In this document: positions 3,501 through 49,248 of the stretch, one piece after another
Layout of the letters: the number at the start of each line of letters is the position of its first letter
How positions within the stretch are numbered: the first letter of the stretch is position 1
DNA from: Cyanophora paradoxa CCMP329
Taxonomy: Eukaryota > Plantae > Glaucophyta
DNA: 64,000 bases
Assembly (NCBI GenBank): GCA_004431415.1
Contig: QPMI01000093.1
Location: 124,001-188,000, forward strand
Reading direction: 5' to 3'
Position numbers and translations under genes: made by a program
Notes under the pieces: generated by a model
What the model was told of the DNA's origin: nothing
What the model saw: only the letters and a program-made list of their open reading frames with translations
Databases searched by the model: none

Positions 3501-6500
3501 GTTTAATTCGCTCACCGTGAACATGGCTCACGCATCCGCATGCAGGTTGATGCAGATAACTCGCGGTGAGAGCGATATCTACGTATATACACAGCTTATC
3601 GCGATCGATGCGAGCTCGAGCATCGCAGGCTGCACACGCAGCTGACCCTGCGGGCGGACAAGTACAAAGAGGGTGCTCAAGCAAGCATGCGCTCAGATGC
3701 GCTTGATTAATTTGGCGTAATGCGCTCCTCTCAGCCCTGGGCTTCTCCCCGTCGACCCGTTGGACTGGTATCGACAGCGTCAGGCTCAAAACAATTGCAA
3801 AGAAGAAGCGCGAAAGAGCATCGGCATTTCTTCTTCATGGTCTTGCACTGGAGGAGGCCAACGAGGTTTGCTCTCGTAACTACCTTCTCGATACATGTAC
3901 GGCTCAAGAGTCATTTTCAACTTAGTGGCTGGACAAAACTGGACATGCCGTGCCTCAGAGGGCTTTCTTCTGGCTTCTTCCCGAGAGTGTGCAAGCGAAT
4001 CTGGATGCATACTTTGCGAGGTTCAATAAAAAGAAGGTGCAAATATACTGCTGTCTCTTTGAACATCTGTGAGCATGTCTTGATTTGTTTTTGCTTGGTC
4101 ACAGGAGAAAAAGCAGTGGAGTGGAACTTCGTTCTTGTGCTTCAAAAGCCCAATGGTGATTAATGCCGGGCTAGGGGCACCGAGCCCATCTTTTGATGAT
4201 ATATGTGTAATTGCGCACTGCCAGTATGCAAGCGAGCAAGCGGAGAGAATTAAATCGAGTGGATCGATGTTCTGCTGCTTCAAGAGCCCAATGGTGAGAC
4301 CCTGCTCCATGGTTCATTCCCACATGCGTGTGTGAATCTGCACGGTCAGTTCGCCCGCAAGCAACCGGAGAGCGAGAAACTCGACAATAAAAAGGTAAAT
4401 TACTGCCTATGCCTGCACACACACACGCATAGCTCTTACATTGACAATATTGTGTACGATTGCACGCGGTCAGGGCGCCCGGCAGGAACACATTGGAGCG
4501 ACGCGCGAGATGAAATCGAGTGGAACGCCATTCTGCTGCTTCAAGAGTCCCATGGTAAGACACCGCTGTAAATATAACCATGGGATGGCTCGACCGTGAC
4601 TGCGTGACTGTGCACTACCAGTACACCGACGACCACAAGGAGACTCAATCGCGACCAAAATCCTTGCATGTGGCCGAGGAAAGGCCAGCGCCCAAGATGG
4701 GTACGCCGTTCTTGTGCTTCAAGAGCCCGATGGTGCTAAGCTGCCACACTCTGCATCTCTTTATATACAATATGAAGCCTGACGATCCGTATTTCATCGT
4801 GTGCGTCCAGTACGACCGCAAGCAAGAGGAGACCGGGCCTGAGCGAGCGACCGATCGCGATCGCGAGGTCACAAAATCGATGGGAACGCCATTCTTGTGC
4901 TTCAAGAGCCCGATGGTGACAAACATCTCCCGCTGCAAGCAGCATGCCCACAGTCTCTAACCGTTTCTTAATACCTTGGCGCGTTCATGACCAGTACGAC
5001 CATGAGGATGAAGAGGAGAGCTCGAGCAAGAAATCGAGCGGATCAGTATTCTCCTGCTTCAAGCGGAAGGTGAAACGTTATTACGGATGTGAATATGTAT
5101 CTCAATGCATGTCTGTAACAAATTGATAGAAGGCGTTTCGGCAACCGGAGGATGTTGACTCGGAGGACGTGCAAGCGGGTGGAAAGGCGTTTCTGGAGCC
5201 GACGCCCGAGCATGTCGTAAGCGCACTGAGATTTAATTATTTCTTCCGCATTAGATTTCTTGAGTTGCAACGCCAAGGCTCAAACCACGTGCGCATGAGC
5301 AGGTGCTTGTACGTCACAGTGTTCGCCAAGCACTCAGCGAGAAACGGCGCCTCGCGAGCTACACCTGTATTTTCATTGCAGGTGCACTGGCATCAGAAAC
5401 CATGCACGGAGTTTCGCCACTTGCCTGTCTCACACTTCAATTTTCCCGTGCAGTTGTGACTGCCCTACTCGTTATTGCCGCCAGTTTTCTCATTGATGCT
5501 GAAATCAACAAGGCAAGGGCTCAAAATACAGCGGCTCAGCACAGCGACTTCCTCGGGGAATTGGGAACGATTGAAACCCAGCTCTACTTGGAGATCAAGA
5601 CCTTGCAGGAGGAGCTTAAAAGCCTTGATCTGGATTTAGACATTGTTGCGAACAAGATACTCAAGATACAACCCGTTACTTTGCAAAATTTGACTGCCAC
5701 GCACAACCTTACGGACGTTGATGAGCTCATCAAATTCTTCAAATCTCCACCCGCAACTGCAGCAGCAGCGTTGAATGCAACTTTAGCAGCAGCCTTGAAT
5801 GCAACTGGTGCAGGAGCCTTGAATTCAACTGCAGCAGCGGCCTTGAAATCGACTGCAGCAGCTGCCTTGAAGTCGACTGCAGCGTTCAACAATGAAACTG
5901 TGGTGACTACGAGCAATTCGACTGCGGCGGTTAACCGCACCCTACTGCAACTTCGATTGGATTTGTCTCGGCGGGCAAGGGACCTCGATCTTCAGCGTCA
6001 GCAGTGGGCTCAGGGGCAGGTTAAAAACGCTAAGACGCGGCTTGAAAACGAACTACGGAGCAAAGCGGACATGCGCAATGTAACTGCGGAGCAGCGCAAT
6101 GTAACTGTGGATCGACGCAATGTCACTGCAGAGCAACGCAATGTAACTGCGGAGCAACGTAACAGAACGAGCCTGCACATCGTAATTGCAGAGCTATGCA
6201 ACATAGCGACACTGCGCATTGCATCTGCGGAGCAACTCGCTGAATATGCTGGGAAACTCGACAAGACCGCGGCGCTCGTCGAGGAAACGGGGCGAGTCAA
6301 CTGCAACGACCTTCGAGTGTATTTCAGAGCGAGCCTGCACACCGTATTTGCGGAGACATGCGATATAGCGACACTGCGCATTGCATCTGCGGAGCAACTC
6401 TATGCTGGGAAACTCACCGCGACCGCGGCGCTCGTTAACGAAACGGGGCAAGTCAACTGCAACGACCTTCGAGTGTCTTTCAGAGCGAGCCTGCACACCG

Positions 6501-9500
6501 TATTTGCGGAGACATGCGATATAGCGACACTGCGCAATGCATCAGCGGAGCAACTCGCTAAATATGATGTGAAACTCACCACGACCGCGGCGCTCGTAGA
6601 GGAAACGGGGCAAGTCGACTGCAACGACCTTCGATTATACTTTATAGACCTGGAGGTGCGGCGCGCGCTAATCTTGGCTTCCCCTCCGCTTATTTATTAT
6701 TCACCTATTTGAACCGGAACAGCTGCAGAACAACGTTAACGCGGTCGCGTACTACTCCTATTTGAATTCGACAAAAAGCGTCGAGGCACTACTTCGCGCC
6801 GTAAACGCCACGTGCTACACGGAAATCGATTCTTTTTACAGGATGATACTGGATATTCGGAATTACAACAATTATGACTGCGCAAACTGGGGTTCAATTC
6901 AAGACAAAACTGAGAGGGGAAAGTGGAGATCTAGCATGACTCCTTCTGAACTTGTTGCCTTGGTCGTCGATGACGCGTTCGGTTCTGTGTCGACGCCTGC
7001 AAATATCACGGTGTGCAACTGCCGCAGGGGGCTATATCCTGCGCTTGCGTGTGCCCGCCTGCAGCTTGAAGCTCATGAAATGCAATATATCAGGTGCCTA
7101 AGCCGACATTCGAGAGATTCACGCACAGCGTGACATACGAGTGCGTGTTTTCTTGATTTAACCCTAACTCTAAGTTCGATTTGGAATGTGTGATAATCTG
7201 TCGCAGGTTTTTCACTAATTCTTATGCTGGCTGGCCGGGTTGCTCAAATTACGATCGTATCTCTGAATACAGTGCGAATTTTTACGGCCTGTCATATGCG
7301 GTGCGTTGGGACTCGAGTGCAGAAGCCTCGGACAATTTTTAGCATAACCACGTTTGACCGGCGATGGCAACAGCCGTATACAGCAAAGATCGGAAACGGC
7401 GAGTGCATCAAAACCGAGTCCGTTACGGTGCACCTAAAGCCTCGAATTCAGATACATGCCACGGATATTCAATTTACTTCGGATTTCATATAACAGTTCA
7501 ACGACTCATCAAATTCCCGAGAAGTAAACCTGCGTACCTACAATGTGTTGGGTGAACTTTCCAACGAATACAGTGCACCTTACGTCAGGGTACCTGAGAT
7601 TTTTGAGGCTGAAGCTTTCAGCCTCAATTGCAAGCTCACTTTTGCTTCGAATTTGCGATTTCCGTAGGTTCGGTGCTCTCTCGATGGCAGTTTCAATGTG
7701 GACGGCTTCATGGACGCTCAGTGCACTCGGCCTGCTTCTTATGGATCATCCTACTAGTGAGTGCTGTAGATATGCTCATGTGAAATAAGGACTCCCATAA
7801 CGCATCCCCGCACGCACAAAAAGCTCTGGAGGTGCTAGCTATTGCAAGAAAGCCCAGACTTACACTCTCAATGTACATGCACGTGGCGTCTACTTCGCTT
7901 ACAAGGCATTCTGCAAGTCCTTAACAAGCTCTGGCCATGGCTCAGGATCCGTATGTGCTTGCCCCGCCGTTCTGTCCTCACAATCGTGCTCAAGGCTTTT
8001 ATCTAGAGCGGATCGGAGAGCGGATCCTCTACGACTACGCCGATTGATGAAACAACGACGTCGACTATGCCGGAACCGGCGCCGGCGCCTCCGACGAACG
8101 CCAGCTCCAGACCCGTATGCGCCCCGGCCCGCCCACAAACTCGGGCAACTCAATTCTAATCCAATCCTTTGCTATTCAAGACTCCAACACCTACTCCCAA
8201 ACCTAGCCCTACGCCTTTGCCGAGCTTGGTCGTAGATTTCTTGTGCGTTGGTGACATTGATTTCTATCAAGATATACAGTGATAGCTTTTTTCCATCATT
8301 GGCATCATGGAGATTAATATTTCCGTTGCAGATTCAATAATGCAGACTGCAGCGGACGCGATGGTGCTTACGGAAAGTACACGATTGAGATCCCAGACAG
8401 AAGATGCATAGATCCCCTTACAATTCGGGTGCCTCTACAGCGTCACTCAAATTCCTCTTTAGATCTGATCGAAATCGCGCGATCAGTTTATTGAGGACAA
8501 TGGAAATGCAGCGTCAGCGTTCACATCCAGTTATTTGCGAAACGCTATAAGCCCTTTGGGTCGGGGTTACATCACGGTATCTGACAATATTCACCCAAAT
8601 AGAGAAGCGAATCTTCCATCGTATCGTACTAACATTCACTTCTTTGTAGGCGAAATGCGATGAGGACCGGTTCTACACGTATGCGTACACGTCGTCGAGT
8701 TGCCCTTCGTGGAGTTCGGTAGCGTCGTCCACCTTCAGGTGAGTGAAAGACGAATAACACTCCCGGCTCTTTTATAATATATTTATAAAGCCTCACACCT
8801 TTCTCGAACTCAGCTCTTTCGGCACTCAAAAATGCATGACATCCACATACTTAGGAAGTACCAACACCTACAAAGTTGCTTGCAGGGCGAAGACAACGCC
8901 TACGCCGACTCCCACGCCTAAAGTGCCATCAAGGGCGAACGTGACTTTCAAGTGCGTCTTTCCTGGTTTATTCAGCGACCGACCATGAAGTAAAGTTTAA
9001 GCTTGTTATAATTACGTTCACCGCAGGGTTTTCAGAAGGGCTTCGGACACTTTAGCCACGTGCGATCCGGCGACTGCCATCTCAGCTAGCGACGCAGCGT
9101 TTTACGGGTTTTCCACTCCAGTGCGCTATGATCCGCCTCAAACTCAACTGAATTGCAATTGGAGCTTAAGCACTGTCGACAGCCATTCACCGCGGAGTTT
9201 CCAGTCGATGAATGCATGAATGCAAATTCAATTCGGGTACTTTTTTTAGATCTCAAATTTGCGACTAGTTATTCGTAGTGACTCGCGTGGCTTGTAGTTC
9301 AAGGAGGCGTCGAACGAGACAATTGCGACTGCTCGAGAAGTGAACGAGAACACGCACACTGTCTTGCGTGACATTGTAGCAGGAGGAGCACCTTACGTCA
9401 AGGTACATGAAAATCGCTTCCAACATTAAATTTTGTGCTTGATTTTAAGTTAATATCGTGATCGCCCATCCTTCCAGGCGAGGTGCGAGATAGGCCAAAA

Positions 9501-9725
9501 CGGGAACCGTTACGTTGTGGAGGAGCACACGGACTCTCAGTGCACGGCGGCGACTGCGACAACCTTTCAGTAAGTGCTCTAAATCTGTAGTCCCTTGAAT
9601 ATATCTATATATCATGTTCACATCTTTTCCTCAGCTCGCCTACTGCATGCATCTGGAAACAACTAGCGCAAGTGCAGGCCGATGGCCACGAAGTCGATTA
9701 CCAGGTTATCTGCAGCAAACTATAG
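590..9725 (+). CDS. Multi-exon gene (>30 exons): tandem-TIR type-II transmembrane protein with a long N-glycosylated ectodomain
   Basis: Hand-spliced with GT-AG introns. TIR1: FHDAAVSYARS...FAATLAQGLQRFGLRTWYD...ISAAIEGCECFIVVATKEWFRSPACLVELDHAVWLGRKIVAL. TIR2: YDVMVSYRRK...LKERAISHWVD...WGKSIAAAIKGASVVLILLTNDWLQSQYCVDEFEYAQAQNKRVV. Linker: LHTQLTLRADKY...FLLHGLALEEANEWL...LEPTPEHVVLVRHSVRQALSEKRR. TM: LASYTCIFIAVVTALLVIAASFLI (~5350-5495). Many NxS/T sequons follow. The last exon ends ...DYQVICSKL-TAG at 9725. Continuity of the exons at 7.1-9.6 kb is less certain. Confidence 0.8.
1090..3105 (+). other. Two TIR (TIR_2-like) domains, split over about 13 exons
   Basis: The canonical TIR motif order (D-x-x-V-S-Y, W-x-D, I-x-x-A-I, hydrophobic strand, S-x-x-C-x-x-E, then K/R-I/V-V) is recovered twice after splicing. 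Confidence 0.85.
4105..5069 (+). repeat. Array of short phase-0 exons, six carrying a G[TS]xFxCFK motif (five end CFKSPM, one CFKRK)
   Basis: Exons 4105-4155, 4225-4293, 4350-4394 (spacer without the motif), 4474-4554, 4622-4732, 4811-4915 and 4995-5069. All lengths are multiples of 3 and all are bounded by AG/GT. Confidence 0.85.
5755..6650 (+). repeat. Coding repeats in the ectodomain: AAAL[NK][AS]T heptads, RNVTAEQ heptads and three ~52-54-aa Cys-containing repeats
   Basis: Visible in ORF 5303..6712. The unit SLHTVFAETCDIATLRIASAEQL..GKL..TAALVxETGxVNCNDLRVYFRA occurs three times. Confidence 0.9.
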
Positions 9726-10189
9726 TTCAAACCCCTCACACGACGGCTGGACGAGTCTTCACCTCTGACTTCGATTTCGAGATCTTCCACGTCTTCGAAT
9801 TCAGCAAAATCAGTTACATGATCTGGAGTCTGGCCGGCTATAGCTAGCGATACACTGTGATCAAGCAGATAGTTAATGTTTGAAAGTGCGCCCTTCTCGC
9901 AAGCAGGCGAGTGCAGTGCGGGTGCCCACACTAGTGAATCAGGGCCCGGGGGGCTGTTCCTATGGGGTATCCGTCACGCCGCGCTGTGCCGCGCCTGCGC
10001 TCTAGGGCCAAGTCCCCCCCCCCTCTTTCCCCCACCCCCCCACCCCCCAACCGCCCTCTTGGCCTGCACCCCTAGGCCTGGCGCCCATGCCCACGCCTCC
10101 CGTGCGCGCATCGCCGCCCCGCCACCCCTGCACCCCTGCCCCCCAGCCCCGTGTCCCAGCGCCCCTGCCCCCCGCGGCCCTCCACCCTC

Positions 10190-11540
10190 GCAAGTCGGGC
10201 TCCCTGCGCCCGCCCCGTCGCGCGAGACGTGGGTCTGAAGGGGGGAGAGGCGCGCACCAAGCGAGAGAAGGGTCGCCGCTGCGCCCCTGCCGACGCCGCG
10301 AGGGCGCCGCGAGTCGGGCTCCCTGCACACCCCGGGGCCCGCCCCGTCGCGCGAGGCGCAGCGCCGAAGCGTGGGGAGGCCGCCAGGCGCTCACCAAGCG
10401 AGAAAAGGGCCGCCGCTGCGCTCCGGCCACCCCTGCCGCGAGGGCGCCGCGAGTCGGGCTCCCTGCGCCCGCCCCGTCACGCGAGGCGCGGCGCCGAAGG
10501 GCGGGAGGCCCGCACCAAGCGTGAGAAGGGCTGCCGCTGCGCCCCGGCCACCCCCGCCGCGAGGGCGCCGCGAGTCGGGCTCCCTGCACCCGCCCCGTCG
10601 CGCGAGGCGCGGCGCCGAAGGGCGGGAAGCGCGCACCGAGCGAGAGAAGGGCCGCCGCTGCGCCCTGGCCACCTTCGCCGCGAGGGCGCCACGAGTCGGG
10701 CTCCCTGCACCCGCCCCGTCGCGCGAGGTGCGGCGCCGAAGGACTGGGAAGCGTGCACCGAGCGAGAGAAGGGCCGCCGCTGCGCCCCGGCCCCCCGGCG
10801 CCGCGATTCGGGCTCCCTGCGCCCGCCCCGTCACGGCGTCACGCGAGGCGCGGCGCCGAAGGGCGGGGAGGCGCGCAACAAGCGAGAGAAGGGCCACCAC
10901 TGCGCCCCGGCCCGGCGGCCGCCCCCACCCACGGCCGGGCCCCGAAGGCGCGCGAGGTTGCCGCGAGTTGGGCTCCCTGCACCAGCCCCGTCGCGCGGGG
11001 CGCAGCGCCGAAGGGCGGGGAGGCGTGCACCAAGCGAGAGAAGGGCCGCCGCTGCGCCCCGGCCGCCGGGCGCCCCCCGCCGCGAAGGGCGGCGAGGCGC
11101 GCACCGAGCGAGAGAAGGGCCGCCGCTGCGCCCCGGCCGCCCGGCCGCCCCTGCCGCGAGGGCGCCGCGAGTCGGGCTCCCTGCGCCCGCCCCGTCACGC
11201 GAGGCCGCGCGCCGCCGGGCGCGGCGCCGAATGACTGGGAGGCGCGCACCGAGCGAGAGAAGGGCCGCCGCTGCGCCCCGGCCGCCTGGCGCCCCCGCCG
11301 CGAGGGCGCTGCGAGTCGGGCTCCCTGCACCCGCCCGTCGACGTCGCGCGAGGCGCGGCGCCGAATGACTGGGAGGCGCGCACCGAGCGAGAGAAGGGTC
11401 GCCGCTGCGCCCCGCGGGCCGGCCAGCCCCACCGGTACCGTGAGGGCGCCGCGAGTCGGGCTCCCTGCGCCCGGCCCGCCCCGTCGCGCGAGGCGCGGCG
11501 CTGATCATGAGGGTCGGGGAGGCGCGCGCCAACCGAGAGA
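10190..11540. repeat. GC-rich tandem repeat (minisatellite/satellite), about 10 units of ~110-200 bp
   Basis: The anchor GAGTCGGGCTCCCTGC or a close variant occurs at ~10193, 10311, 10451, 10572, 10693, 10805, 10965, 11169, 11313 and 11453. Each unit also contains CACCGAGCGAGAGAAGGGCCGCCGCTGCG or a variant. Confidence 0.95.
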
Positions 11541-13020: not shown

Positions 13021-16000
13021 ATGTGGTCGGGGGGATCCGCGGGCGCCGGCGACCCTCGCTGGTCTTCCAGCTCGGGCCAGTACATCAGCCAGCCGTCGCA
13101 ATACACGGCCTTCTACACGCCCCATACGGGCCCGCAGCCCGTCGAGTACCGGGCTGGGCCCCCCGCGGCCGCGTACGGCGGATACAGCAGCCCGCCGCCT
13201 GTAGGCGCGACGGAACGCGTTAGCCAGCCGCTCCTGGTCGATGCATATGCATATGATCGTCAAGATCGGAAGCTGTCGACAACGTCGACCGCCGGCGGCC
13301 GGCGGAACTCCCGCCGGGGCAGCCTTGGTTCGGCTGACACGGATGTCGCGGAGTACGAGCACCTCAAGGAGGCGATCAACGACCGCTTCGCGAACGCCAA
13401 GCTCGACGTGCGGTGCGTGCATATGCATATTCGTGTATATATATATATATGTGCACATGTGTCCCGGTTGCGAGCTGAACCCGCGATACGCATATGTATA
13501 CGGCAGGCGCGCGGAGATCTATCTTCGCGTGCAGAAGAAGACCCTGCAAGCGATGCAGCTTTACCGGTTCGTCCGTTCAATCGTCGCCTTAGGGCCTAGA
13601 CGCCGGATGCCATGATGCTCGATGCCACCGAGGCAGCGTTAGCTAAGCGCTATCTTCAATTGCAAATGCGCAGCGAGCTGCTCCTGTACCTCTTCTTCAT
13701 CGCATTGTTCTTCACGCTCGTTCTGGTTCGTTGCGATTGAGATCGCGTGTGATGCATGCTTCGTATTCGTGCTATCTTCGAGTAGGTCTGACCGGCCGGC
13801 CCTCGCCGCCGCGCAGCGCATCGTGCCGGTCAACACCAGGTTCGAATTCGGCGCCGCATACACCCGGCCCCGGCCCGCCGCGCGAGCGCTCTGCCGCCGG
13901 CCGGGCCGGCCTTCGAATTCCCCCACCAACGGCCCCGGCCCGCGGCCGGACGCGCGCCCGCAGCTACGAGCAGTTCTCCAGCCTCACGGGCCCCAGCTGG
14001 CTGAACATCAAGGAGGTGCGCCCTGCCCTGGATTCCGCCGCTCCTAACCCGCCGCGCCTGACCCTGTACATGTACCCCCGCGCAGGTCGGCAAGGACCCG
14101 ACTGCCTTCTCGTCCACCGACAACCCGGGTACCGCAGCTTCGAGCCCTCCGCTGTCGAGGCCGCCGGCTCGAACATTATCCACGCAGACGATTTCTTCGT
14201 CTGGATCAAGGGCCGCCTGCTGAAATTCCTGGACGGGACCGACCCCGGCAATTCCATGTTCCTTTGGTACCGCAAGCAGGTAATTATATATGTATATAAT
14301 TTACTTGTGAAGCGTAAACAAAATCATATGTTCGGATTGCCATGGCCGTAACTTATATTCGCGGCAGATTGGAGCCATTCGAGTGCGCCAGATCCGCAGC
14401 GTTCCCTCCACCTGCGAGGCGTTCAACCCGACCGGCCTCACGAAGATGCCCTACAAGTAGGCCCCTCGCGATCGAGCTCGAGCCCCCGACCCCCTCTCTG
14501 AAAAAATAATTTCGTACCATTGCGCTGACCAGCTCGGGGCCAGGTGCTACGAATCGTTCCCGGACACTATCGAGGACCGCGGCATGCTCAACGGGCTGTG
14601 CGTGCTCGTTACTTTCATAAGAATTAAATAGATCGCTTTGGCGGCGCGCGCTCATGATTACTTCCGGGGGTACAGGTTCCGCTGGGAGAATGAGTTTGCG
14701 GATTTCGTCCCATCCAAAGGCTCCATGCGCGACTCGCTCTCCTGGAGCTACGGTCCGAGCATTAATTCTGGAATTCCTTCTTGAGCTGAATAACACGCAA
14801 ATGATGATTACAATTGTGATCGGAGTCTGACGCGCGTACGCCCCGGAAACCCCCAGGCAGAGGAGGGTACACAGTCGACATTCCGGCCGGCTCACTCGCG
14901 CAGACCGCTGCCGCCATCGACGCCCTCCAGGTGCCTGCGAGCGTCCATTGGCGTCGGCCGCTTTAACATAATGTTATTTAATTATTTCCCTTCTCCGTTC
15001 ATCAGGCGGCGAACTTCGTGTCGGAGGCGACGCGCGCCGTCCGAGTGTCCGTCAACCTCCAGAACCCGCACACCAGTACGTTGATTCGTTCCATCATCCG
15101 AAGACGTACCCCCGGTCTGATTATATATATCCCCCCAGACACTTTCATCACCGGCCAGTTCAGCGTCGAGTTCCCGTCTACGGTACCCCCCACCCCACCC
15201 CGCCCCCTTCCGCCCCGGGCGCCACCCCGCAACTTAAATTGCTCGAACCCGCCCCCTTCGCCTTCGACCAGGGCGCCTCGGTCCCCTCCACGACTGTCGA
15301 GACCCTGCAGCTCCGCCCGCTCAGGTGCGCGCCGCCCTAATTACTAGAAAGCATACGCGATGAGGCCCAAGCCTAGCCGTATGCCGCCACGCCGGCCTAG
15401 CCGCATGCCGCAGGCCTAGACCTTGGCCAACGTTATACGAAATTATACGCAACGAGGCCTAGAAGGCACAGGGGCTCCCGGCCCTTTCCCGACTGCGCTG
15501 AGGCCTTTGAATTCCTCCGCAGCCGCCCGAGCACTGTCGTCCTCGCCATCGTCGTCGCGATCGCCGCCGTCGGTGCGCGCGCGTCGCTACAATTTTCAGC
15601 GCTGAAATTTGACTGACGCCCGGCGCCACGGCGCCGGCCTGCAGTGTACCTCGCGTACGAGTTCAAGCAGATGTGGGACGCCGGCCTCGTGGACTACGTT
15701 TTCGGTGCGGTTTTCGATATAAGTCAAAATCGGCAAAGGTCTCAGATATCTCTCTATATATTTTAAATATAGTAGCTGATATTTTTATATCAGTTATATA
15801 TTTCGACTACGTTTACGATGCGATGTATGTTAAGATCGGCAAAGGCCTAGATCTAGGTCTCGACGAGTGAGTAATATAAGGTGAACATTTGCGGGCGCAG
15901 AGGACAAGTGGAACACGTGGGACATGGCCAACCTCTCGCTCATCATCGCCATGCTCGCCTACACGACCTACTTCCGTGCGCCCGGGCGGCCGCGGCGCCG

Positions 16001-19000
16001 CGCTGTCGCGCAACCGCCCGCTCAGCGTCTGCTCTTTGATTTAGTTTCTGCCTGATCGTGAGCCGCTTCTCTTTGAATTCCCCAGATTTCTGGTCGGACG
16101 GCATCGCAAAGCAATTCGCCAACGGGGCAGATCCGGCGGTGCCCCTCCGCCCCCGCCCCTCTACAAATTCGAATGCGCCCTCCGTTTAATTTCAGTCGTC
16201 ACCGTTGTTAGGTCTTCTACCGCCTCGACGAGGGCGTGACGACGATGCGGACGATCGTGCAGCTCACCGGCCTCGCCATCCTACTCTGCTGCATCCGCGT
16301 CTACAAGGCCCGCCCGCCCGCTAGAACTCGGCTTGATTTTTATACCGTCGAGTTGACCCGAATCCGACGCCTCCCGCAGTTCTTCGAGCTGAACCCGCGC
16401 CTCTCGGTGCTGACGAACACGGTCGGCAAGGCCGTCCCCGACCTCGCCGCCTTCCTCATCATCTTCGGTGCGAAACCCGCACCGCAATCTCGCATGCTCC
16501 ATCGCATTTAGCGTCTTATTGCCATGGCCTCGTCGCGCAGTGATTCTCTTCGCCGGCTACGCCTTCATGGCCTGGATCATCCTCGGGCACCGCATGGAGA
16601 GTGCGCCTCCTCCCCCCCTAGGCCTCCCCTATCCTCTTCTCGCGCCCGTTCGAGCGATATCGATGTTTCGTCCGCGCCGCCACTGGGCCACAGTGTTCCA
16701 CAGCTTCTACGCGTCCTTCGCGAACCTGTTCGGGAGTCTCGGAGGACTCGAGGGCCTCGCGGGGGAAATCATCGAGGCCTCCCCCGGCGTCGGCATGGTG
16801 CGCGCGCCCCGGCAGCCGGCCCCGCGGGCGGCCGCGGCTAGCCGATTCCAAGTGGCGGGATCGATTCCAAGCTATAGGATATAAGGAGACATGCGCCTAC
16901 TTGCGCGTGCATTCCAAGTCGCGGGACCCGGGGAGATAGGGAGGGGCCCGGGTCGGATCCAAGGGCAGATCGATCCTGCCGCCGCTGATCCGCCGCGTCC
17001 GCCCTCCCCCCGCAGTTCTTCTACTTCACGTTCGTCATCTCCGTCTCTTTCATCCTCGTCAACATCTTCATCGGTCCGGCGCCGCTATTTTCGTGTTCTT
17101 AAAAAATAGATTTCTATGCAATCGATTGCACATGCGGTCTTAAATTTTATAAGCTTTAATCTCGCACCTTGAATATTCGATCCCGCGTTTTTGCGCGATA
17201 CCTGACGCGCCTCCGTCCATCTTTGCACTTGCAGCCATCGTCGGCAAGTACTACACTGAGGCGGGGTGCGCGCGCCGTCAGAGGCTGAGGCGCCGACCGC
17301 TGGCGCCATATCTAGTCATTGAGTCGCTAGTCACTAGTCACTATCTAGGCCTAAGCATCGCCCGTCGGGTCTAGCCGAGCCGCGACCGGCGTCCTGACCA
17401 TATGATCGCTCGCCCCCTGTCTTCTCGCAGAGACGACGCGGTGAAGCGCGAGGAGGAATTTAACGAGCTCATCTCCGCCGAGGACCGCCTGACGCCCCTC
17501 GACAAGCTCAACCGCGCCCGCTGCGACGTGCGCCCCGCCCCCCTCACATCTGCGCCTCTTCGAAGTAATGTTCCCCCGAGCGGCTTCGGCAACTAAATTT
17601 CGGCGACTTTAGCGGCTTAAGCTTGTGCTATTTTATATGATTTTAGAATTGACTTTCTATACGACCGATTGCGATTTTAAGCGAAACTTCCCCCGAGCGG
17701 CGCGCACGTGGGCCGGCAACTAAACCCGATATCCTCCTTCCATTCAGCTCAAGCCTCTCGACAACGGCCGTCCCTTCATCGTGAAACCGGACGAAACTCT
17801 GCGCGTGCGCGCCCTGACCGCTGCGGTCCTCATGCTGGGTATTTTATTCGTCAACCTGACGGCTGCGGCCGCGGCCGCGGACCGGGCAGGTCTGGGTACA
17901 CCTTGAAATGCGCGGGCTCATCGACGAGGCGCGTCCCCCTGTTCATCCCCCTCCCCTCCCCCCCCCCCCCCCCCCCCCCCCCATCCCCTTCCCTGGCTGA
18001 GGCCGGCTGGCTCCCGTGGCGCAGTCCCGTGGGTTGGGGTCTACTATGGCCAGGCCAGGCACAAACCGGCGCCTCTCGACTTCTGGCTTGAACGTCGTTG
18101 CGAACCACGAAGCAGAGTGCGCATGAGCGCCTCGAACACCCGCGGCCGCGGCAGCGGCGGTCGGCATCCATCCATCCATCTACGCGAGCTCACTACGGGC
18201 CGGGGCGCAGAACCACTGGGAGCCGCATTACCGCGCGCTGCATGATGGACATTCTTACGGCACGCCATCCGATAATCCGCCCCCGCCGCGGCCGCCGCGG
18301 GCCGCCTTGGCCCGATCTCGAAAAATTAGCCGGTGGCAACGCGTACGGCTGATCATGATGTCGTAAACGCCGCAGCCCAATGCGGAGGTGCAGATGAGCG
18401 GAGTGAAGCTGGATTCGGGCCTTATCGCATACGTTGGTACCTTCAGGGTGGAGCAGGCGAGTCTAAATCTTTAAGCTTTAATTTGTTCTTTCGATTCTAA
18501 TGGGGCCTTGAACTTCTTTTTTAATGTTAACGAGGACACAGGTTTTCTCGGGCTTCATTGACCTGAAGATGAAAAGCAGCACGGGCCAATACAAGCAAGG
18601 CATCGAGATTGGCGACGGATGCTACTTCGAACTCACCTGGCGGTGTGCCCCAGCTGCCTTTGCGAGCGAATTCGATCCGCTAAGCTCGAATCGCTCGCGA
18701 TTCCAACTGCAGGACGTACCTGCGTTCGCTGGTAGACCTGTACCTGCTTGACCCGAAGACCGTGCAGCAGCACCGCGTCGACAAGATTTTCAAGGACTAC
18801 CAGCTGGACCAGCCCGAGGAGAGCTGTGTCGAGGAGGCCGACGTGCGTACCCCCTTTTCTCCCCCGCCCCCCCCCCCCCCCCACGCCCCCGCTGCTTGCA
18901 CCCCTCCGTTCTTGAGCGGCGTGGGCGCTCGCTCGCAGTTGGAGCGTGCTATCGTCCAGATTTCGGAGCGCAACAACGAGCTGCAGGGGTGAGGCCACTT

Positions 19001-22000
19001 GTTTTTCCTGCGCCGCGGCCGCCCCCCCGCCCGCCCCCCCGCACCAAGCTTTCGGAGCCGACACGGGCCCGGCCCCTCCAAACGCGCAGGAAGGTTCAGC
19101 TGGGCCAGGACGTCGTTCAGGTGAGCTGAGATCGGATGAGATCGGATCAGATCAGATTCTGAAGGCCGCGCGCGCGCCTCGCTGCTGGGGGGTACAGGTC
19201 GCTACGCCGAAATGGCTCAGGCGCAAGTCCTACCACCTCGATGACATGTTGGCGGTGCGGAAAGGAATTCGAACATATAATAATATTAATATAACGCCCC
19301 GGAGCCCGCTGGAGCTGTAGCTGTAGCTGCCTTCTCACTCTCGCACCGCCGCCGCCCCGCTCACAGATCATCCGCAAGCTCGAGCGCTTCGCCGAGGCCC
19401 ACAATGGCAATCTGGTGCTGCACACTTAAGCTTTATAAGCTTTCCACGCTTTTAAGATTTAAAGCTTGTAAGCTTTTAAGCGCACGCCGTCATATGCGTG
19501 CCAGCTTCCCCGTCCTAATAACTTCAGTTTCGAATCCGCACGAGGCCCCGGCCCGCATCCGCGCGCGCCCCCATGCCAGCCTCCCCGTCCGACGGTCCTT
19601 ATATATACTCGCTCGCTCCCGCAGCTGGATCGGCGCAACCACCTGAAGCCCCTCGTACACGAGGCCGTCAACATCGACGCCCTGTACCGCGCGGTCCGCG
19701 TACCCCCCCCCACCCCTTTGTCCAGATCTCTGCATTCCTCCTCCTACCCCTCCTACCGCCTGACCCTGAGCTCGCCTCAGGTCATTTCTGAGGGCAAGGC
19801 GCAAGTGAGCCGAATGCTCGACGGCATGAAGGTCAGTCCACCCGATTCTCGCCCTCCTCAACAAAACAAAGGCCTTCTAAATGAATTTCGCCGAGTCGCG
19901 TCTAGATTTAGATACATATATATCAATCTCACGCCTGATTATGAGCTTGCTTTGCGGCAGACGGCGGCCTCCGAGAGCCTTGCGAAGGCGGGGTCCTCGG
20001 GCGCGGCTGCCCGGGGCCTCCCGAGGGCCGGCTCCACCCGGATGAGCGTCTCCGCCATCGAGTCGGCAGGCTCCGCCAAGACCATCACCGCCCGCATCGT
20101 CGACCTCCGTAAGGCGCGTAATTATATAAGCGCGCCCCTCTATTCAAACCGCATCGAAATTTAATTAGTTAGCATCGAAATTAGTTGGGAAATTTACTAA
20201 GTTAGTACCTTAGAAGAAGCTTTAAAAGTATCTTACCTAAGTTAGAAGAAGCTTTAAACCGCATCCGGACTCTCGCATCGTCGACCTCCGAAAGGCGCGC
20301 GCGCGCGCCCCCCTTATATAGATATTGGAACCGCATCGGCGCCCTGCGCGCGCGTGGAGTGCGCGCGCGGGCGTCCACACCGGAACCGCCCCCGCCTCCG
20401 GGCCCTTCTAAATATGCGATCGCCGGCGATCTTCTAATAAGTCGGGCACCTAGCCCTGAGAAGATAAATTTTTAAGCCGCATCGGCACCCTGCGCGCGCG
20501 TGGAGTGCGCGCGCGGGCGTCCACACCGGAACCGCCCCCGCCTCCAGGCCCTTCTAAATATGCGATCGCCGGCGATCTTCTAATAATTCGGCACCTAGCC
20601 CTGAGAACCTAGGCCTGAGAAGATAAATTTTTAGGCCGCATCGGCGCCCTGCGCGTGAAGCGCGCATCCACACCGGACCGGCCCGCCTCCGGATCTGGGC
20701 CCCTCTGGATATGTGATCCCTGACGAGCCTTCGAATTTATATGTCCCATCGCGATCGATTCTTTAATTTGCCGCCCGCCCGCGGCCGCCTCTGTCAGCTC
20801 GCCTCGCCGCCCTAGACCGCTCCCCCCGCCCCACGTGCACCCCACCTCGTTGCTCTACGTAAGTTGTCGATACTGATTCGACGCCCCGGCCGGGCCCGTG
20901 CATGCGCATGCGCAGGCGCAGAAAATGCAGCCGCAGCAGAAGGACGGCGAGGAGACGGACATGCGCTACGAGGAGATCTACGGGCTCCTTATGGAGGCCG
21001 CCGAGGAGGTGCGTGCGGGGGCTGCATGGTGGGACCCGCGGCTGGCGGGGCCGGTCGGGCCCCTTGCTATATGCCTCTAGATCTAGACCGCGGAAGAGGT
21101 ACCGGTGTGGGAGCTGTGCATGCGGGGCCGACCCATGCCACACAAGCACCTGTATGCGCCCAGTGCCTTCTGAAGATCCGAGCGGCGCGCAGTTCGACCG
21201 CCGCTGCGAGGAGCTCTACCTGACCATCATCGCCGACGACGAGGCGCGCTTTAATTTAGCTTCATAAGCTTCGCGTAAACACGTTGACTAAATAAGCGAA
21301 TTTCGGCGCAGAACACCGCCGACCGGGACGGGGACGGCGACCCCGACATCAACTACATCCGCCGCTCCCTCCGCTTCGACCAGGTCCCCCCCTTCGCCCC
21401 TCTCTGTCACGTCGATGTTGCTGAGTGGCGGGGTACGCAGGTGGCCGACGTCATCCGCAAGCTCGCGATCGGCTCGGGCGCCTCCGAGGTCGATATCAAG
21501 AAGCAGGTACGAGCGCCCCTCCCGCCTCTTCGGCCCTTTAATTTCCTCCCGCTTGACGCGCTGTACCCCCAGACCCTGCTTTTCCTCGCTTCGTTCCCCG
21601 CCAGCTGCTTCGACACTCTCGACAAGGTATCCTCGTCCCCTCCCCTTGCTCCCCCCTGGAAGCTTTTAAACCCGTCTTGCAGGAGCGCGAGAAGCTGGAG
21701 ATCTTCATCCCGCACCCGTATGACACCAAGGCCATCATCGGCACGGAGGAGTGCGAGCCCCCCCCTCCCCCCCCTTCCCCCCCCCCCCTCCCCCCCCCCC
21801 CGCCCCTCTGATTTCTCGCGCCCTTCCGCAGCGACCCGGTGGTCCGCCTGCGCAAGGCGAAGGTCAAGATCCCCGTCGCCGCATCCGCCGTCGGCTCCTC
21901 CCCGAGCCTCTACGGGGTACGTCCCCCGGCCACGTTTCCGTCCCATGTCGCCGCGCATGCCCGCCCGACTCGGCGATCGCGAACAGAGCGGGGCCGGCGC

Positions 22001-23293
22001 GTGGGCGGTCGGCGCCGGCGTGCAGGAGCGCGAGGTGGACATGGTCGAGCTGATCGGGATCCTGAACCAGGACACCTGGGCCATGAGTGCGCTTACCCGG
22101 CCCGGCCCGTCCGGCCCAAATAGATCGCCTCGCCGCAGGCAAGGTCAAGGGCGGCTGGAAGTTCACTCCAGGAATGCGCAACGACAACAACAAGGAGCAT
22201 CCTCTCCTGAAGGTGCAGCGCCTGAGGTTCCCCGCCCCTCGTGCTGGGCTCGCTCTGACGCCGGTACCTCCTCTCTAGCCGTATTTGCAGCTCGAAAAGA
22301 AAGACCAGGATGGAAACACGAAGCAGGGTCTTGAGATCCTCCGCGCCGCCGTCTGCTGCGGGTTCGATCCTGTCCTGGACCTTTTCGGTTTCCAGCTCAG
22401 CACTCACCGCCGTCGGCCCTAGATACGTGTTCACCCCCCCCGCGCCCGGCGCCGTGCTCCCGCGCATCGTGGAGCCCGCCACCGGCTGGGAGCAGTACCG
22501 CAGCCAGCTCGCTCCGGTACCCCCCTTTTGCTCGCTGCCCCCTCTTCTCGCGCGCCCGATCCGACGGCCGGTCTCCGCCAGGGGTATATGCCGCTCCACT
22601 GCGTCGGGGCCAGCAAGATGGACGACCCCGTCGTGCGTACCCGCCTCAAAGATCTCCACGAAGCGTACCCCCTCAATCGTTCCCCCCCTCCAGATCCGGG
22701 AGCTGGTCGACCTGCTTGCCCGCAACGCGCACGACCACTGGGCCAAGGCCAAGAAGCACGCGGGGTACACCTTCGGGCACGAGAACAACGACAAGCTCCT
22801 CACGCACAAGGCGCGTCCACGTACCCCCCGCGCAGCTTACTTGTGTCATCAGTGGTCCCCGGGGGCCTCCCCCTAGCCCCAGCTCTCTGCTTGAGCCCGG
22901 CGGCGGCCTGACACCGGCGCCCTGGGGCTCTGCAGGATTTGATCCCGTACGAGTGCCTGAGCTCCGAGCAGAAGAAGAGCAACCTGGAGGCCGCCGAGAG
23001 TGAGCCGCGGCCGACCCGTTGACGCTATAGACAGATTCAGAGCTCGAGCCGGTCGGCCGCGGGCCGGCCGCGGGGCCCTGATCATGACTGCGCGCCCCCG
23101 CGCGCGCCGCGCAGCGACGCTGCGCCTGATCCTGGCGTGCGGGTGGGAGATCAAGCCGTCGCAGTCGAACATGGCCACCGGCTTCTTCCAGAAGTCCTGG
23201 AAGCAGGTGCACTCGGCCCGTCTTGTGCCTCTTATATATATGCGTACTGAGCCCGGGCGGTGCGCGCAGATTAAAGGACTCATCCCGAATTAG
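13021..23293 (+). CDS. Polycystin-2/TRPP-like cation channel with two C-terminal RyR repeats (PKDRR-like); about 45 exons
   Basis: S1 ELLLYLFFIALFFTLVL. Polycystin-domain motifs IGAIRVRQIR, GRGGYTVDI and FVSEATRAVRVSVNLQNPHT..FITGQFSVEFPSTG. S3 KWNTWD. S4-S5 IRVYKFFELNPRLSVLTNTVGKAVPDLAAF. Pore/S6 FHSFYASFANLFGSLGG...FFYFTFVISVSFILVNIFIAIV. RyR repeats ELIGILNQDTWAMSKVKGGWKF...KEHPLLKPYLQL and DLLARNAHDHWAKAKKHAGYTFG..NDKLLTHKDLIPYECLSSEQKKSN...TLRLILACGWEI. Confidence 0.88.
20330..20760. repeat. Intronic tandem repeat, ~147-160 bp unit; two close copies and one diverged copy
   Basis: CCGCATCGGC[G/A]CCCTGCGCG...CCACACCGGA at ~20331, ~20477 and ~20636, inside the long intron starting at 20114. 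Confidence 0.85.
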
Positions 23294-25165: not shown

Positions 25166-27003
25166 TTTTTTTTTTGCAAAAGTGGACGTCGCATTGATAC
25201 ACCACGGCACATGTATCAATGTTCTACGTGACGTGCCCTTCCGACCGGTCATCTATCTAGCCGAGGGTGCTAGCTAGGTGCCGGCCATGGGTCGCTCAAT
25301 ATGGGAGGTTCGCCTGAGTGGGGGAGCCATGGTTTTCGGTGATAGCCGTAACCAGACCCACGCGCCCACCCCTTGATCAACTCCTCCATCCCTCATGAGC
25401 CCTGGAAGTGAAGTGTCTCGCAGTCCGCCGCCCTCCCTTGCCGCCGCTCCGCCACGCCTCCTCCTCCCCACTCCGCCTCCTCCCTCCTCCTCACCTGCGC
25501 CCCAGGACCCCGATTAATCGGTGTCCCGTTTTGTCGAGGTGAAGAAGGTGGTAGGAGGAAGATATGAGGAAGGAGAGGGAGTGGGCGGAGGCAGCAGCTT
25601 GGGCGGGCAGCGGATGCGGGGCAAGGCAGGGAGAGGTGCCGGGACGGCAGAGTGGAGAGAGCGTGGGCACTGACAGGCGACGCAGAGAGCTGGAGTGCGG
25701 AGACGAGGCGGGCCGCGAGGGGTCGGGAGGGGTCGACCGGGTTAGAGGGAGGGGCCGAGGCCAGGGGGTGGCCGAAGCCATGGGGTTGGCCGAAGCCAGG
25801 GGGTGGCCGAAGCCGATGGGGTGGCCGAAGCCAAAGGGGGGCCGGGGCCATTGGGGGGCCGAAGCCATAGGGGTGGCCGGAGCCAGCGGGGGTCTGACAC
25901 TTGAGGGCCGGTTGGGCCGGGGGGAGACCGTAGGGGCCGAGGGGCAGCGTCTTGCGAGGTCCGAGCGGGGGGTCAGCTGAAGCGAGGGGGGGAGGGGGAG
26001 TTGGCTGCTTGCAGCGTCGTAAGTGGTTTGTACACTCCGGGTGCAAAGAGGGACGTGATTGTGGGTTGCCCCGTGGGTATCGGCACCGTTCGCGCTTTTT
26101 TTATCATGCGCCTGGGAGTCTTGCGGCCGGTTGCCTTTCTTTTCGCCGTAGGTACGGGCGGGGCGGGTGTAGAGGCGGGAGGGGGAGGGGTCGCGGGGCG
26201 CGGGCATTTGGGTGCCGGGGCGGAGGGGTATCGGCTGTCCGTTTACGTGAGGCAGGCGACGGGCGTGTTCGTTTCGGGGAGGGGCCAGGGGGGCCCCGGA
26301 GCGGGGCGTTTGGAAGGTTGGGTAGTGTTCGTAGGACCCGCGGGCGAAGCGGGCAGGATGCCAGTGTCGGAGTTCTCGTGTGACTGTCGTGCTGGGGTAC
26401 CGCAGGTGGGGAGGCAGGGCAGGAGGTGATCTCAGGGCGGGCGGGGCATTTTCCCCGTCTGGCGTCGGAGTGGGCCTGGAGGGCAGATGCAGAGGCGAAC
26501 CGAGTGCCGCAGGTGCAGGAGAAGTCAGACGTCCGGCGGCGGGTCCTGCATCGGGCAGCTGGGGGAGGGGGGGCCTGGGGTGAGGGGCGACGGGGAGTCG
26601 TGCAATTGCTTGGCGGAAGTTTTCCAAGAGAATCCATGGTTGGCCTTCCGAGCCCAATTCGCAGCAGAAGTCGGTGATGGAGATGGTATCATGGAGGGAG
26701 GGGGCGGGGGGAGGACGGGGGGGAGGGGGGGGACTGGGCGGCTGCACTAGAGGCGAGCGGGAGGGTTTGGAGTCTGCATGTTTGCGGTACCGACGTTTGG
26801 TTCTGTCATTGATGCCGTGTCGGAGCTCCCAGGCGTGGTTGCGGGCGCAGCGGTCTCTCCAGATCGCACGGAGGTGTTGGTCGAGGAGCAGCGCTAGGTC
26901 TTTTTGGATTGACGATGAGGTGGTCTTGTTGATGCCCAGAGCTGTGCAGAGGGCAGGCAGTCCTGCCGGGGTACCGAGGCGCAGGAGAGCGAGGGCGGGG
27001 AAG
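25166..27003 (-). mobile_element. 5'-truncated non-LTR retrotransposon (LINE) 3' end
   Basis: 17-bp exact TSD CAATGTGCCACCAAGGG at 25149-25165 and 27004-27020. T10 at 25166-25175 is a minus-strand poly(A). The minus ORF contains IWRDRCARNHAWELRHGINDRTKRR, resembling LINE ORF2 C-termini. ~18-bp GGGGTGGCCGAAGCCA repeats at ~25755-25885. Confidence 0.88.
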
Positions 27004-27460
27004 CAATGTGCCACCAAGGGGGTACTGGATGGTCTGGAGCTGCCGTCTGATCAGCTTATGGGCATCATATCAAGCTGCAGAAGTGCCCAGAAGGTCTCTA
27101 GACGTGTATAGAACTGCATTATATCGCTCTAGCATGAACAGATTCGTCCTAGCTATATAGAGTGCAAGAAATGCCATGATGGTGTGTCTACGGGTACCCC
27201 CCCAAACTAATAAACGTTATTAATAAGAATGGCTGTTCCGCGACCTTACTAATAACGTATTATTAATACGTTATTAATAAAATATAATGAGTACTCATTA
27301 ATAAAGTGCCCATCACTGCGTTTAAGTACGTTACCTTTCACTGCAAATTCTACAATCATTCCTTCGATCATGTTAAACGAAATGCCCATGAATGCCCGGA
27401 ATTATTTCATGAATGCCCGGATCCCGGAACTCTAAGTCGCGAATCGCGATCGACATCGAG

Positions 27461-28096: not shown

Positions 28097-28964
28097 CATC
28101 GAGGCTGATGATGATCGAGCCTGCGAGCTCGGCGGCGATCGAGCGCTATAGCTAGCGCTAGCTATTCTAACTTCTAAGCTATAGCCTATAGCCTAGTAGC
28201 TATAGGATAGCCTATCATATACTATGATATATAGTCGGATGAGCGATGAGTATCGGATGTGGGCCCATCATGTGGCCCGCATCCCGATTCCCGAGCTATC
28301 ATAGTATAGCCTAGGAGGCTATAGCCGCTGACTCAGTGAGCCTACTAGTATAGCCTGCACAGGCTGCACTGCGGGCCTGCGGCACTGCAGCTGCGGCCGG
28401 GCAGGCTGCAGCCTGCCAGTGCAGCATCGATATCGAATCATTATCGATATCGCAGGCTTTCGCCGAGTCGCAGGCTCGCAGACTGGCAGCTGCCACTGCC
28501 TGCCAGACTGTGCCAGTTCAAAGTTGCAGTGCAGCCTGACTGCCTGCCAGACTGAGCCAGTTCAGACTGTGCCTGCGCAGCTGCAGCCTGCCGCACTGCG
28601 GCAGTGGCACTCACATCGTAGTAGGGTAGCACCGACTGTACCGTACTACGGTAGTACGCGACTACGTATATTACGGTATATACTACGCGTCAGCCTGGCA
28701 GGGGGCCGCTCACCGTGACACGCCGCGGCCGTGACGCGGAGGCCGCTGAGCTCGAGCTTGAGCATTACGGACGGCCGCGGCAAATCAAGGCCTTGGGCTT
28801 CAGAGCTTCAGAGCTCCGGATCTTTCATGGGGGCGGAGCCGCAAGCTGCGCTTCTTTGCGGCGGAGCCATTCGATCGCGAAGCGCGACATCGACAATGAC
28901 GAAGCCCAAGCCGGCACGCACGCCCGCGGGCCGGCGCCGCGGACTTGCGATCGGCCTCTACGCT

Positions 28965-31900
28965 ATGCGATCGATGCCAGGTCTTAAATCACAACGTCTC
29001 GCATGCAAGACTCTGCTGACCGCGAGCACATTGATGGTCCTTTGCGGCGGCTTCCTTCTTCTTGCGTTGCGGGCTGTGCCGACGAGCGCGACCGGTTCCG
29101 CAGTAGGTGAGGTACCGGCGCCGCCTGCTGCTCATTCCAGCTCGTTGCTCGAGATTCTCATTCAAATCGTGCAGGGAATCTCCGGAAGATTCACATGGTC
29201 AAACAGCTCTCGCCGCTTGGGGGGGACGCCCCGGAGTCGGCCGAGCTCCGCCTCGCCATTCTCGGTACAGCAGACACGGGCGAAATGCAGTTATGCGGTG
29301 AGCTGAAAAGCTCATTCTGTGACCTTCAAGGCTTGCGTCGATGATCTCGGCAGAGTGGGATTTCGTCAACAGCATTTGCATGACCACTGTTGACCTGACA
29401 AAAACAGCGAATCCCGTGTGCCTCAGTTGCACTGCTGTTTGAAATTTATGCTGCAACTGGCAAACTGATCGAAACTGTCTAGAATAATGACGGAGAGTTT
29501 CGCGGCGCCACGGATTTCTCATTCTCCTCGTTTTCACCCTTCCCCGGACGCCACGTACGTCGCCTGCGGCGCGTGCTTGCAATTGATCATGATTCGTACG
29601 CGTATCACGGCAGAACCCGGATGACATTGGCCGCTGGGTTGGAGACATCGCCTATCTCTTTAACGAGGACAACTTCCTAACAGATAGGACGACAGTTTGG
29701 TCGACTTATGATGCATCCAGTTCAGAACTTCCTCCAAATGATCTGCCATATCTGATGGGCTATGGCATGATCTGGAACTTTTCATGCTCGTATGAGACAG
29801 AAAAATTGCTTAGTCCTTTCGCTTTAGAAGCAAACGAAGACGACTCATTCTGTTTCTTGTATGCCGCCTATAACTGGCTCGGCCATGCATTCGCCAATCG
29901 GAGTCGACTCCGAGAGCTCGGGCCCTCTAATGTGCGTTGATGGATCCATGCACATATGCATGCATATGGATCTATGCTAAGCAGTTTTCGCATGCGCAGT
30001 GCAGTCAGGAGTTTTTTGATTGGATTAAAAACGAGTTTCAACATGATAACGAATGGCCATGGACGAGAGAAGAAGGCTGTGGCAAAACTGTGGCCGACCA
30101 AGGAAGGAGTATCTTTGAGTATCTGGACATCTTGAACACATGTGATCCCGACAGCGGTAGCAACCCTAGCGACACACTTTGTGATCCTTACGCCACAGAA
30201 GAAACCAGCGGCGCATGGTGCTGAAAAATTACATACGAATCACCATACGACCTACATACTTGTTAACACTGCGCGCGCACCGTGGCACAGGTGGCGCGAG
30301 ACCCTCTTTGCGATTGTGGCGTACATCACAACAACTCCGCCAAACGATGCTGATGTGGATGAGCGACTGTTGACACCCTGGGACACTATGTCTGTCAATT
30401 GTTACGGCTGTCGATCGCAATAGTATCCCCGTGTATGCATATTTAGCTTGCGTGTGCAGGTACCGGCTTTTCGGCGCAATCGATACAATGTTCGTTCTCG
30501 ACACGAGGCCAACTGGGTCTTTGGGGTGGATGATACACGTGCGAGATTTAGTAACGCACAGATCTTGAGTGACTCTGACGAATACATGTGACACGCCAAG
30601 GCAAATTTGTTTGGCGTGATGAAACGGAGGAAAGGGTCGCGTGTTGAGGCCGCATCGTCGAATCTTGCAAACTTCACCAGGGATTTGCTCGATGTGACCG
30701 GAGGCCCATTCTCCACGGGCGACGAGCTTGCCTGTCCAATCTGTAAGTTTTGACACGCGCGGCATACGGCAGTGCATACGCACTCGACGGCGCAGCTGCA
30801 GGCTAAACCTTTTCGCACGTTGCAGGGGAAGATGAAAATGTCGCTCCTGATGGGGAAGGTCCGTCTACGGAGGGTGAAACCGTAAGGCTTGTTCTAGAGC
30901 TTGCACACTTCACATTCTGGCAGCGCGGTGCGAAACGCAATCGAAGCAACTCTAGTCTGCAGCTAATCTGCGGCTTTTCAGGGGTGGCGTATTTTGCATC
31001 GTACCTAGATCTGGCACCAATAATCCCAGATTTAAATTCGGAGGATACGTACGAGTTCAGTGAGCTGAGACCAGTGCTGCGGCTCTGCCGTCTTCGGCGT
31101 GACTCCACTCGACAATTAGACCTGGATTTTAAAGAGGGAATCACGCTTCTGCGGAAGGAGATCGGAGAGGAATACTACCTTGTGCCAAAATTAGTTCACT
31201 CGACTAACAAGATCCTCGGAAAGCAAGAGAAACTCGGATACGAATTCGAACTCTTCTCGCACACCCTTCCACTGCCTGCCGTGATGCATGCAATGGCGTG
31301 TGACGGCCGAACTAGTAAGAACGGCCCGATCCGCTACCACGGCATCATGAGGCTGCCATTCTTCAAAGCTGAACATCGTGATGATTTAGAATACCGGGAA
31401 GTGCGACACGTCGTAGCGGGTTAGCACAGATTGTTCCCTTATGCCCTTACACCCTTATGCTGCGGACTCGGCTAACGCGTCCTGATCAGCCTGGAGCTGG
31501 GATGTCTACGACGATGGCCGTGCTGAGCTCATGCGTCCTCCCAAAATTCTCGTCAGCCTTCCGGCGCCTTACATCAACAAAACACTCTCCTCCAACTTCG
31601 ATAACACTGTGGCACCTCAATTCATCGCCCAAAACGCTTGGTCGGGTAACGGCAAAGCGGGCACAGGGGTTTGTCCAGTTTTTCTACAAAGGTCCTATAT
31701 CTAGCAAATTAAAAAATGTATATTGCAGGCGGGCGAAGGGCATTGGGTGGAAGGCATTGACAAGTTCTATTCTTTCTACGTCTTCCCTCATGTGGTCGTG
31801 CGGATGAGGTCGGCACTGATAATCCGCTTCGTGCTTATCGGAAATGAAATTAAGTTTTTTCTGCAGGCGGCCTTCGTTGCATCAATCTGGAATGGGGGGA

Positions 31901-49119: not shown

Positions 49120-49248
49120 AGGGCGCACGGGCCGCCGGGCCGCGGGCGGAGGGCGCGCCCGCCCGCCCCCTCGGCCCCTCGCAAACCAAGTGTACACGTA
49201 TTGAAACTATTATTATGCAATGCGGCAGTGCGATTCTGCGCTAGCTAG

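Follow-up and report, generated by a model that had tools for sequence, protein, structure and literature searches.

The present analysis confirmed at the sequence level that positions 13021-23293 of the window, the 64,000-nt stretch of Cyanophora paradoxa DNA analysed here, read as one open gene, which would encode a glaucophyte PKDRR-type channel ending in two RyR repeats. In PMC7399828 and PMC4820453, the combination of a PKD channel with two RyR repeats is described as oomycete-only, as an earlier sequence-only reading of this DNA had stated. The same reading had noted that the genome does not look oomycete, and an exact EukProt protein match (g24562) identified it as that of the glaucophyte C. 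paradoxa. Judged by domain architecture, PKDRRs are not oomycete-specific, contrary to their published distribution, because members from both Cyanophora and Gloeochaete have the channel and two RyR repeats. Since the algal and oomycete versions have a common middle domain, the family probably has an earlier origin and a wider distribution than has been assumed.

The coding model, in which the exons were placed by hand, runs from an ATG at 13021 to a TAG at 23291-23293 and comprises 4104 nt or 1367 aa without an internal stop (Table 1). In 54 of the 55 exons GC3 is higher in the chosen frame than in the other two, and GC3 of the complete model amounts to 0.88. The sequence-only reading had counted about 45 introns, many of them GC-AG; the hand-built model contains 54 (median 88.5 nt), of which 47 are GT-AG and 7 GC-AG, the latter being a minority of 13%. 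The GC donors are preceded by an exon-final G in all seven cases and by AG in six of them, which is the pattern expected of genuine GC donors. The longest intron, formerly placed at 20114-20920, probably ends at 20915, with a second in-frame AG 6 nt downstream; it owes its length to the tandem duplication with a period of about 146 nt and the copied end of exon 39, and the reading frame is kept on either side of it. The joined protein of the 55-exon model was used for frame, GC3 and hydropathy only, while all searches were done with single exons or database proteins. Scored singly, about 39 of the 55 exons are collinear on a profile built from seven glaucophyte proteins with channel and RyR repeats, and the paralogue g9306 is the best match for 17 of the 29 exons having a match.

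Table 1. Features of the PKDRR-type channel gene in the C. paradoxa window.
Feature	Position	Strand	Basis or remark
Whole gene, PKDRR-type channel, 55 exons, 1367 aa	13021..23293	+	C. paradoxa; annotation tig00000382 g24562 covers the 3' half
Exons 1-2, low-complexity cytosolic N-terminus and pre-S1 helix	13021..13566	+	Exon 2 84% identical to paralogue g9306
Exon 3, S1 helix	13674..13725	+	Hydropathy, glaucophyte profile
Exons 4-14, extracellular polycystin (TOP) domain	13817..15324	+	Exon 8 weak Pfam Polycystin_dom match
Exons 15-24, S2-S6 and pore loop, S6 gate motif conserved	15523..17265	+	Hydropathy, paralogue matches, profile
Selectivity-filter triad Gly-Gly-Leu	16741..16749	+	Mapped via paralogue g9306; equivalent of PKD2 Leu-Gly-Asp
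Exons 26-31, presumed place of the pyruvate-kinase B-domain-like barrel	17748..18642	+	Position and length only; fold predicted in homologues
Exons 32-41, helical region of glaucophyte type	18713..21243	+	Exon 32 z=9 vs paralogues
Intron, 802 nt, GC-AG, longest of the gene	20114..20915	+	146-nt-period tandem duplication and 26-nt copy of the end of exon 39 with its donor
Exons 42-45, pre-RyR helical motif (RFD-x-V ... F-P) and first strand of repeat 1	21312..21750	+	Common to oomycete PKDRR A and B
RyR repeat 1, exons 47-49	22026..22361	+	Trp, Trp+4 Lys and later Arg retained; His and K..D pair gone
RyR repeat 2, exons 51-54	22582..23150	+	His-x-x-Trp and Trp+4 Lys retained

A PKD/TRPP channel with a polycystin (TOP) domain was found by exon-wise profile and BLAST comparisons and by Pfam on the paralogues. 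On the glaucophyte profile, exons 19-23 (S4 to S6) scored 19-39 bits, compared with 4.6 at most after shuffling, and the TOP-domain exons 8 and 12 reached 11.5 and 15.4 bits. Regarding the complete 6-TM polycystin-type channel proposed earlier, five hydrophobic segments were recovered by hydropathy, whereas the sixth (S3) was placed through homology. The S1-TOP-S2-S6 layout is like that of polycystin-2/PKD2L1 (TRPP2, TRPP3), which among solved structures matches the paralogue's channel best (E 4e-38); however, PKD2 has neither barrel nor RyR repeats, and its tail consists of an EF-hand and a coiled coil. The Gly-Gly-Leu triad also lacks the acidic filter residue, a Glu standing one position later, and the missing filter Asp suggests a weak Ca2+ preference in this copy. 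The filter reads LGA in oomycete PKDRR A and AG(D/E) in oomycete PKDRR B.

The two tandem RyR repeats seen by the sequence-only reading are both real, with repeat 1 being degenerate. Pfam recognised two RyR (PF02026) stretches in the database model g24562 (E 2e-22), and exon 52 alone scored 30.7 bits on Pfam RyR (cut-off 27.4) and 40 bits on the glaucophyte profile (shuffled maximum 4.6). Among solved structures exon 52 matches RyR3 Repeat12, and the RyR pair of a homologue compared with nucleotide-bound RyR3 Repeat12 gave a TM of 0.89 by target. Repeat12 of the RyR binds AMP-PCP/ADP via Trp881, Arg885, Arg896 and Arg1019 (PMC12627627), and for a phage RyR repeat binding of gcADPR at 43 nM, and of gcADPR and cADPR at <1 uM, has been reported (bioRxiv 10.64898/2026.06.04.730250). 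Of the four pocket equivalents this copy retains three, all in repeat 1: the Trp, the equivalent of Arg896 and, at +4, a Lys. The Arg1019 equivalent is an Asp, and repeat 1 has lost its His and K..D pair. This His and the Asp of repeat 1 are retained in most other paralogues, and both Trp residues together with the basic residue at +4 are present in all eight glaucophyte RyR pairs compared or modelled. The clamp fold formed by the tandem repeats and the nucleotide pocket centred on Trp are like those of RyR Repeat12 and phage RyR Tad. In contrast to Repeat12, several pocket residues differ, nucleotide binding here is a prediction, and Pfam scans of g24562 and the paralogues found no other domains of the ITPR/RyR superfamily.

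According to structure prediction, the linker of both glaucophyte and oomycete PKDRRs starts with a pyruvate-kinase B-domain barrel, a fold newly recognised for this linker; the accessible parts of PMC7399828 and PMC4820453 contain no description of it. In the predicted C-terminal half of a Gloeochaete protein (AlphaFold, pLDDT 77) the best match other than RyR is to the pyruvate kinase B-domain, residues 27-153 aligning over 89 residues with Z 10.7 and rmsd 2.1. The oomycete linker, from Aphanomyces, was modelled separately from an alignment without glaucophyte sequences, and its top three matches are again pyruvate kinases (Z 8.3-9.3, next match 5.7), the best one covering 83 residues with Z 9.3 and rmsd 2.0; the Atlas agrees weakly. 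In the models of both groups the domain directly after S6 hence resembles the pyruvate kinase B (lid) domain, PK beta-barrel (Z 9-11), whereas it is 11-17% identical in sequence and comes without the catalytic A domain, and a common fold proves no function. In this copy exons 26-31 gave no significant per-exon score for the barrel, and the glaucophyte and oomycete barrels compared as profiles did not align significantly (E 0.07). ESM Atlas feature searches were without result for the linker, and a whole protein retrieved generic PKD2 clusters only.

A further element common to the linkers is the pre-RyR motif, which lies in exons 42-44 of this gene. When the linker profiles were compared after cutting away the channel and the RyR repeats, glaucophyte and oomycete profiles matched mutually at this one motif before repeat 1 (8-16.5 bits; hhalign E 3e-5), compared with a best score of 6.0 bits among 1071 decoys. 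Among the proteins compared, animal RyRs lack the motif, as do the channels of CNG, BK and ankyrin-TRP type that carry RyR repeats. Exon 42 carries a DxDGDG stretch within the motif, which may suggest an EF-hand; Pfam detected no EF-hand in any PKDRR member, and the EF-hand structural matches of the modelled linker were weak (Z 4.5-4.8).

The architecture is found repeatedly in glaucophytes. A PKD_channel and two RyR domains were detected by Pfam in Cyanophora g9306, g18323 and g13046, and they are also present in the Gloeochaete wittrockiana transcripts P0014, P0059 and P0092 as well as in the Gloeochaete-type P0028, the sister of P0059. The ORF of P0014 is complete on its 3.9-kb transcript, hence at least one glaucophyte expresses the channel-RyR fusion. 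The oomycete PKDRRs A and B (PMC7399828, PMC4820453) are of similar length, have the polycystin domain, PKD channel and two C-terminal RyR repeats, and have the barrel and the pre-RyR motif in common with the glaucophyte family, whereas the glaucophyte linker contains an extra helical block of about 200 aa and the gene is rich in introns. Outside the glaucophytes, all other named matches with the full architecture came from oomycetes, in word-indexed searches that are insensitive (1, 7 and 16 matches) and do not establish absence from other lineages. The matches listed in the metagenome scan were single bacterial RyR repeats, and the viral scan yielded two single RyR repeats and no channel-RyR fusion. 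No report of a glaucophyte PKDRR was found in the literature covered, which includes few subscription papers. The PKDRR fragment P0008 (JGI 3300031445) takes a basal position relative to oomycete subfamily B (97/87).

Separate trees of the channel and RyR parts against oomycete PKDRRs, as suggested by the sequence-only reading, clearly recovered the clades, whereas the mutual relation of these clades was neither grouped nor rejected. Glaucophytes, oomycete A and oomycete B each form a clade in both trees (96-100), and the glaucophyte clade is separate from A and B in both (98-100). With this separate position and its GGL filter, the gene belongs to neither PKDRR subfamily A nor B. In the RyR trees, the second of which was calculated with 20 long-branch, fragmentary or redundant rows omitted, it groups with g9306 and shows the longest glaucophyte branch. 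The RyR tree leaves the three PKDRR clades ungrouped, and a single PKDRR clade is not rejected (AU p 0.074). In the channel tree, which has few and mostly unlabelled outgroups and does not include this gene's own channel half, the group uniting the PKDRR clades (92/96) also takes in one long-branch channel without RyR repeats; here a single PKDRR clade is not rejected either (AU p 0.40).

The public annotation splits the locus. The EukProt model g24562.t1 (P0005) starts at a Met in exon 31 and corresponds to exons 31-55, with 100% identity wherever the splice models agree, and it already spans the 802-nt intron. It misses the GC donor at 22811 (window 22763-22935), by which repeat 2 is corrupted, and it departs from the hand-built model at the GC donors 20114 and 21244, too. 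The start at exon 31 could be taken as the beginning of a separate soluble RyR-repeat gene next to a channel gene, and an RNA bridge is absent from the four RNA-type contig runs, in which the exons between 17000 and 22900 (5,901 letters) had no cover apart from spurious GC-rich matches of 17-24 nt. Such runs lose rare transcripts, and lack of cover does not prove that this copy is silent. Two adjacent genes are nevertheless very improbable, because exons 25-32 are joined in frame by introns of 70-220 nt with standard ends, too tight for a stop, a 3' end and a promoter, the paralogues and Gloeochaete transcripts run unbroken through the corresponding stretch, and the very annotation that splits the locus errs at GC donors. 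Oomycete contamination of the assembly, or a recent transfer from an oomycete, might be considered in view of an architecture previously known from oomycetes only. However, the 54 introns stand against two exons in PKDRR B of P. infestans, DNA of the locus was present in 20 runs of one species from 2012, 2019 and 2024, and the paralogues are spread over four contigs and occur in a second glaucophyte genus. Finally, the glaucophyte clade lies outside oomycete A and B, and since it is not nested in oomycetes, contamination or recent transfer drops out as next to impossible.

More weight has to be given to the alternative that RyR pairs joined TRPP channels separately in glaucophytes and oomycetes. 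Such pairs are mobile, being also found on CNG-type, Slo/BK-like and ankyrin-TRP channels, and PKDRR monophyly was not recovered in the RyR tree. Two fusions appear quite unlikely, however, when they have to account for four parts in identical order with the barrel fold straight after S6 in both groups, and for a helical motif at equal spacing before repeat 1; monophyly is, moreover, rejected by neither tree. Because the linker barrel and the pre-RyR motif are common to both groups, one origin is favoured, and we regard a common origin of glaucophyte and oomycete PKDRRs as likely. Hence, of the two possibilities that the sequence-only reading had put forward, the evidence speaks more for an extended family than for an independent fusion. 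The common origin may go back to ancient vertical descent with wide loss or to an old transfer.

TRPP channels are tetramers, permeable to cations and often ciliary. For the present locus we lean slightly towards the full reading of one gene for a glaucophyte PKDRR of common origin with the oomycete proteins, which would work as a tetrameric cation channel of TRPP type, with an adenine nucleotide in the RyR clamp tuning it; for the family in general, a nucleotide-tuned cation channel seems, by analogy, somewhat more probable. Extrapolating from TRPP biology, the tetramer would reside at the flagellum or the cell surface and conduct cations with weak selectivity. The RyR pair would, following Repeat12 and the phage protein, be a clamp binding an adenine nucleotide, be it a cyclic ADP-ribose-type signal or ATP/ADP; on closing, the clamp might act through the helical linker and the barrel on S6, thereby tuning gating. 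This copy may have an altered ligand affinity, be retuned or act as a modifier subunit, because it is the fastest-evolving paralogue and its repeat 1 is partly degenerate. The P. infestans PKDRR is a multimeric cell-surface protein that gave no Ca2+ signal in HEK cells, and according to PMC7399828 channel activity is not known for any PKDRR.

With the same gene and ancestry, the RyR pair, at any rate that of this degenerate copy, could instead serve as a scaffold for protein interaction or assembly and not sense a ligand. An interaction role was proposed in PMC4820453; repeat 1 is devoid of the His and K..D that bind gcADPR in the phage protein, the Arg1019 equivalent is an Asp, and the long branch of this copy points in the same direction. 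The conservation of both Trp and the basic +4 residues in all eight glaucophyte pairs compared or modelled, and of His and Asp in most other paralogues, makes the scaffold unlikely, and the nucleotide-tuned channel remains our preferred reading. As a doubtful and far-reaching speculation, PKDRRs might be an ancient class of nucleotide-gated polycystins that predates the Archaeplastida/stramenopile split, whose RyR clamp senses a cyclic ADP-ribose-type messenger, possibly from Cyanophora TIR proteins as a Thoeris-like pair, with the co-opted pyruvate-kinase lid barrel as coupling element.

Tandem RyR repeats were also observed on other channels. They occur in CNG-type channels with a cNMP domain (P0032, L085:8001-12029, and P0046), in a Slo/BK-like RCK protein (P0029, L086:850-3678, a weak match) and in ankyrin-TRP channels (P0026 from Cantina marsupialis and P0050); in the Cantina protein the RyR repeats and ankyrins precede the channel. 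Judged by such layouts the RyR pair seems to be a module that recurs among channels, and its presence on CNG, BK-like and ankyrin-TRP proteins is contrary to the published view that RyR domains in eukaryotes are confined to RyRs, PKDRRs and oomycete kinases. The oomycete-only claim, which is overturned here, underlay the case for PKDRRs as selective fungicide targets, and the glaucophyte members point to an old origin. Furthermore, a linker fold can now be named for the whole PKDRR family. A harmless, culturable alga with four paralogues and a small soluble RyR pair offers a test system for RyR repeats as nucleotide sensors; whether they act as such in channels is a question that also stands for the human ryanodine receptor.

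Several other features were noted around the gene. About 3.3 kb separate the channel gene from the end of an upstream TIR gene (about 650-9700, forward strand), whose product carries a transmembrane segment and a long C-terminal portion; its TIR domain (2145-3102) is composed of eight short exons and retains the catalytic Glu position. This adjacency may be due to chance, because TIR genes are very common in the C. paradoxa genome. A GC-rich degenerate tandem array (10150-11540) lies between the two genes. Downstream, a Pro-rich ORF of 508 aa on the reverse strand (25393-27017) with Cys/His knuckle-like stretches and without a Pfam match is probably a retroelement remnant. It is followed on the forward strand by a large membrane-protein gene (about 28860-42080) that contains numerous Cys-rich repeats as well as a nearly exact internal duplication (about 1.3 kb), and by an ELP4-like and transporter-like block that, compared by eye, is present in two tandem copies of high identity (about 45050-52800 and 53350-59700+).
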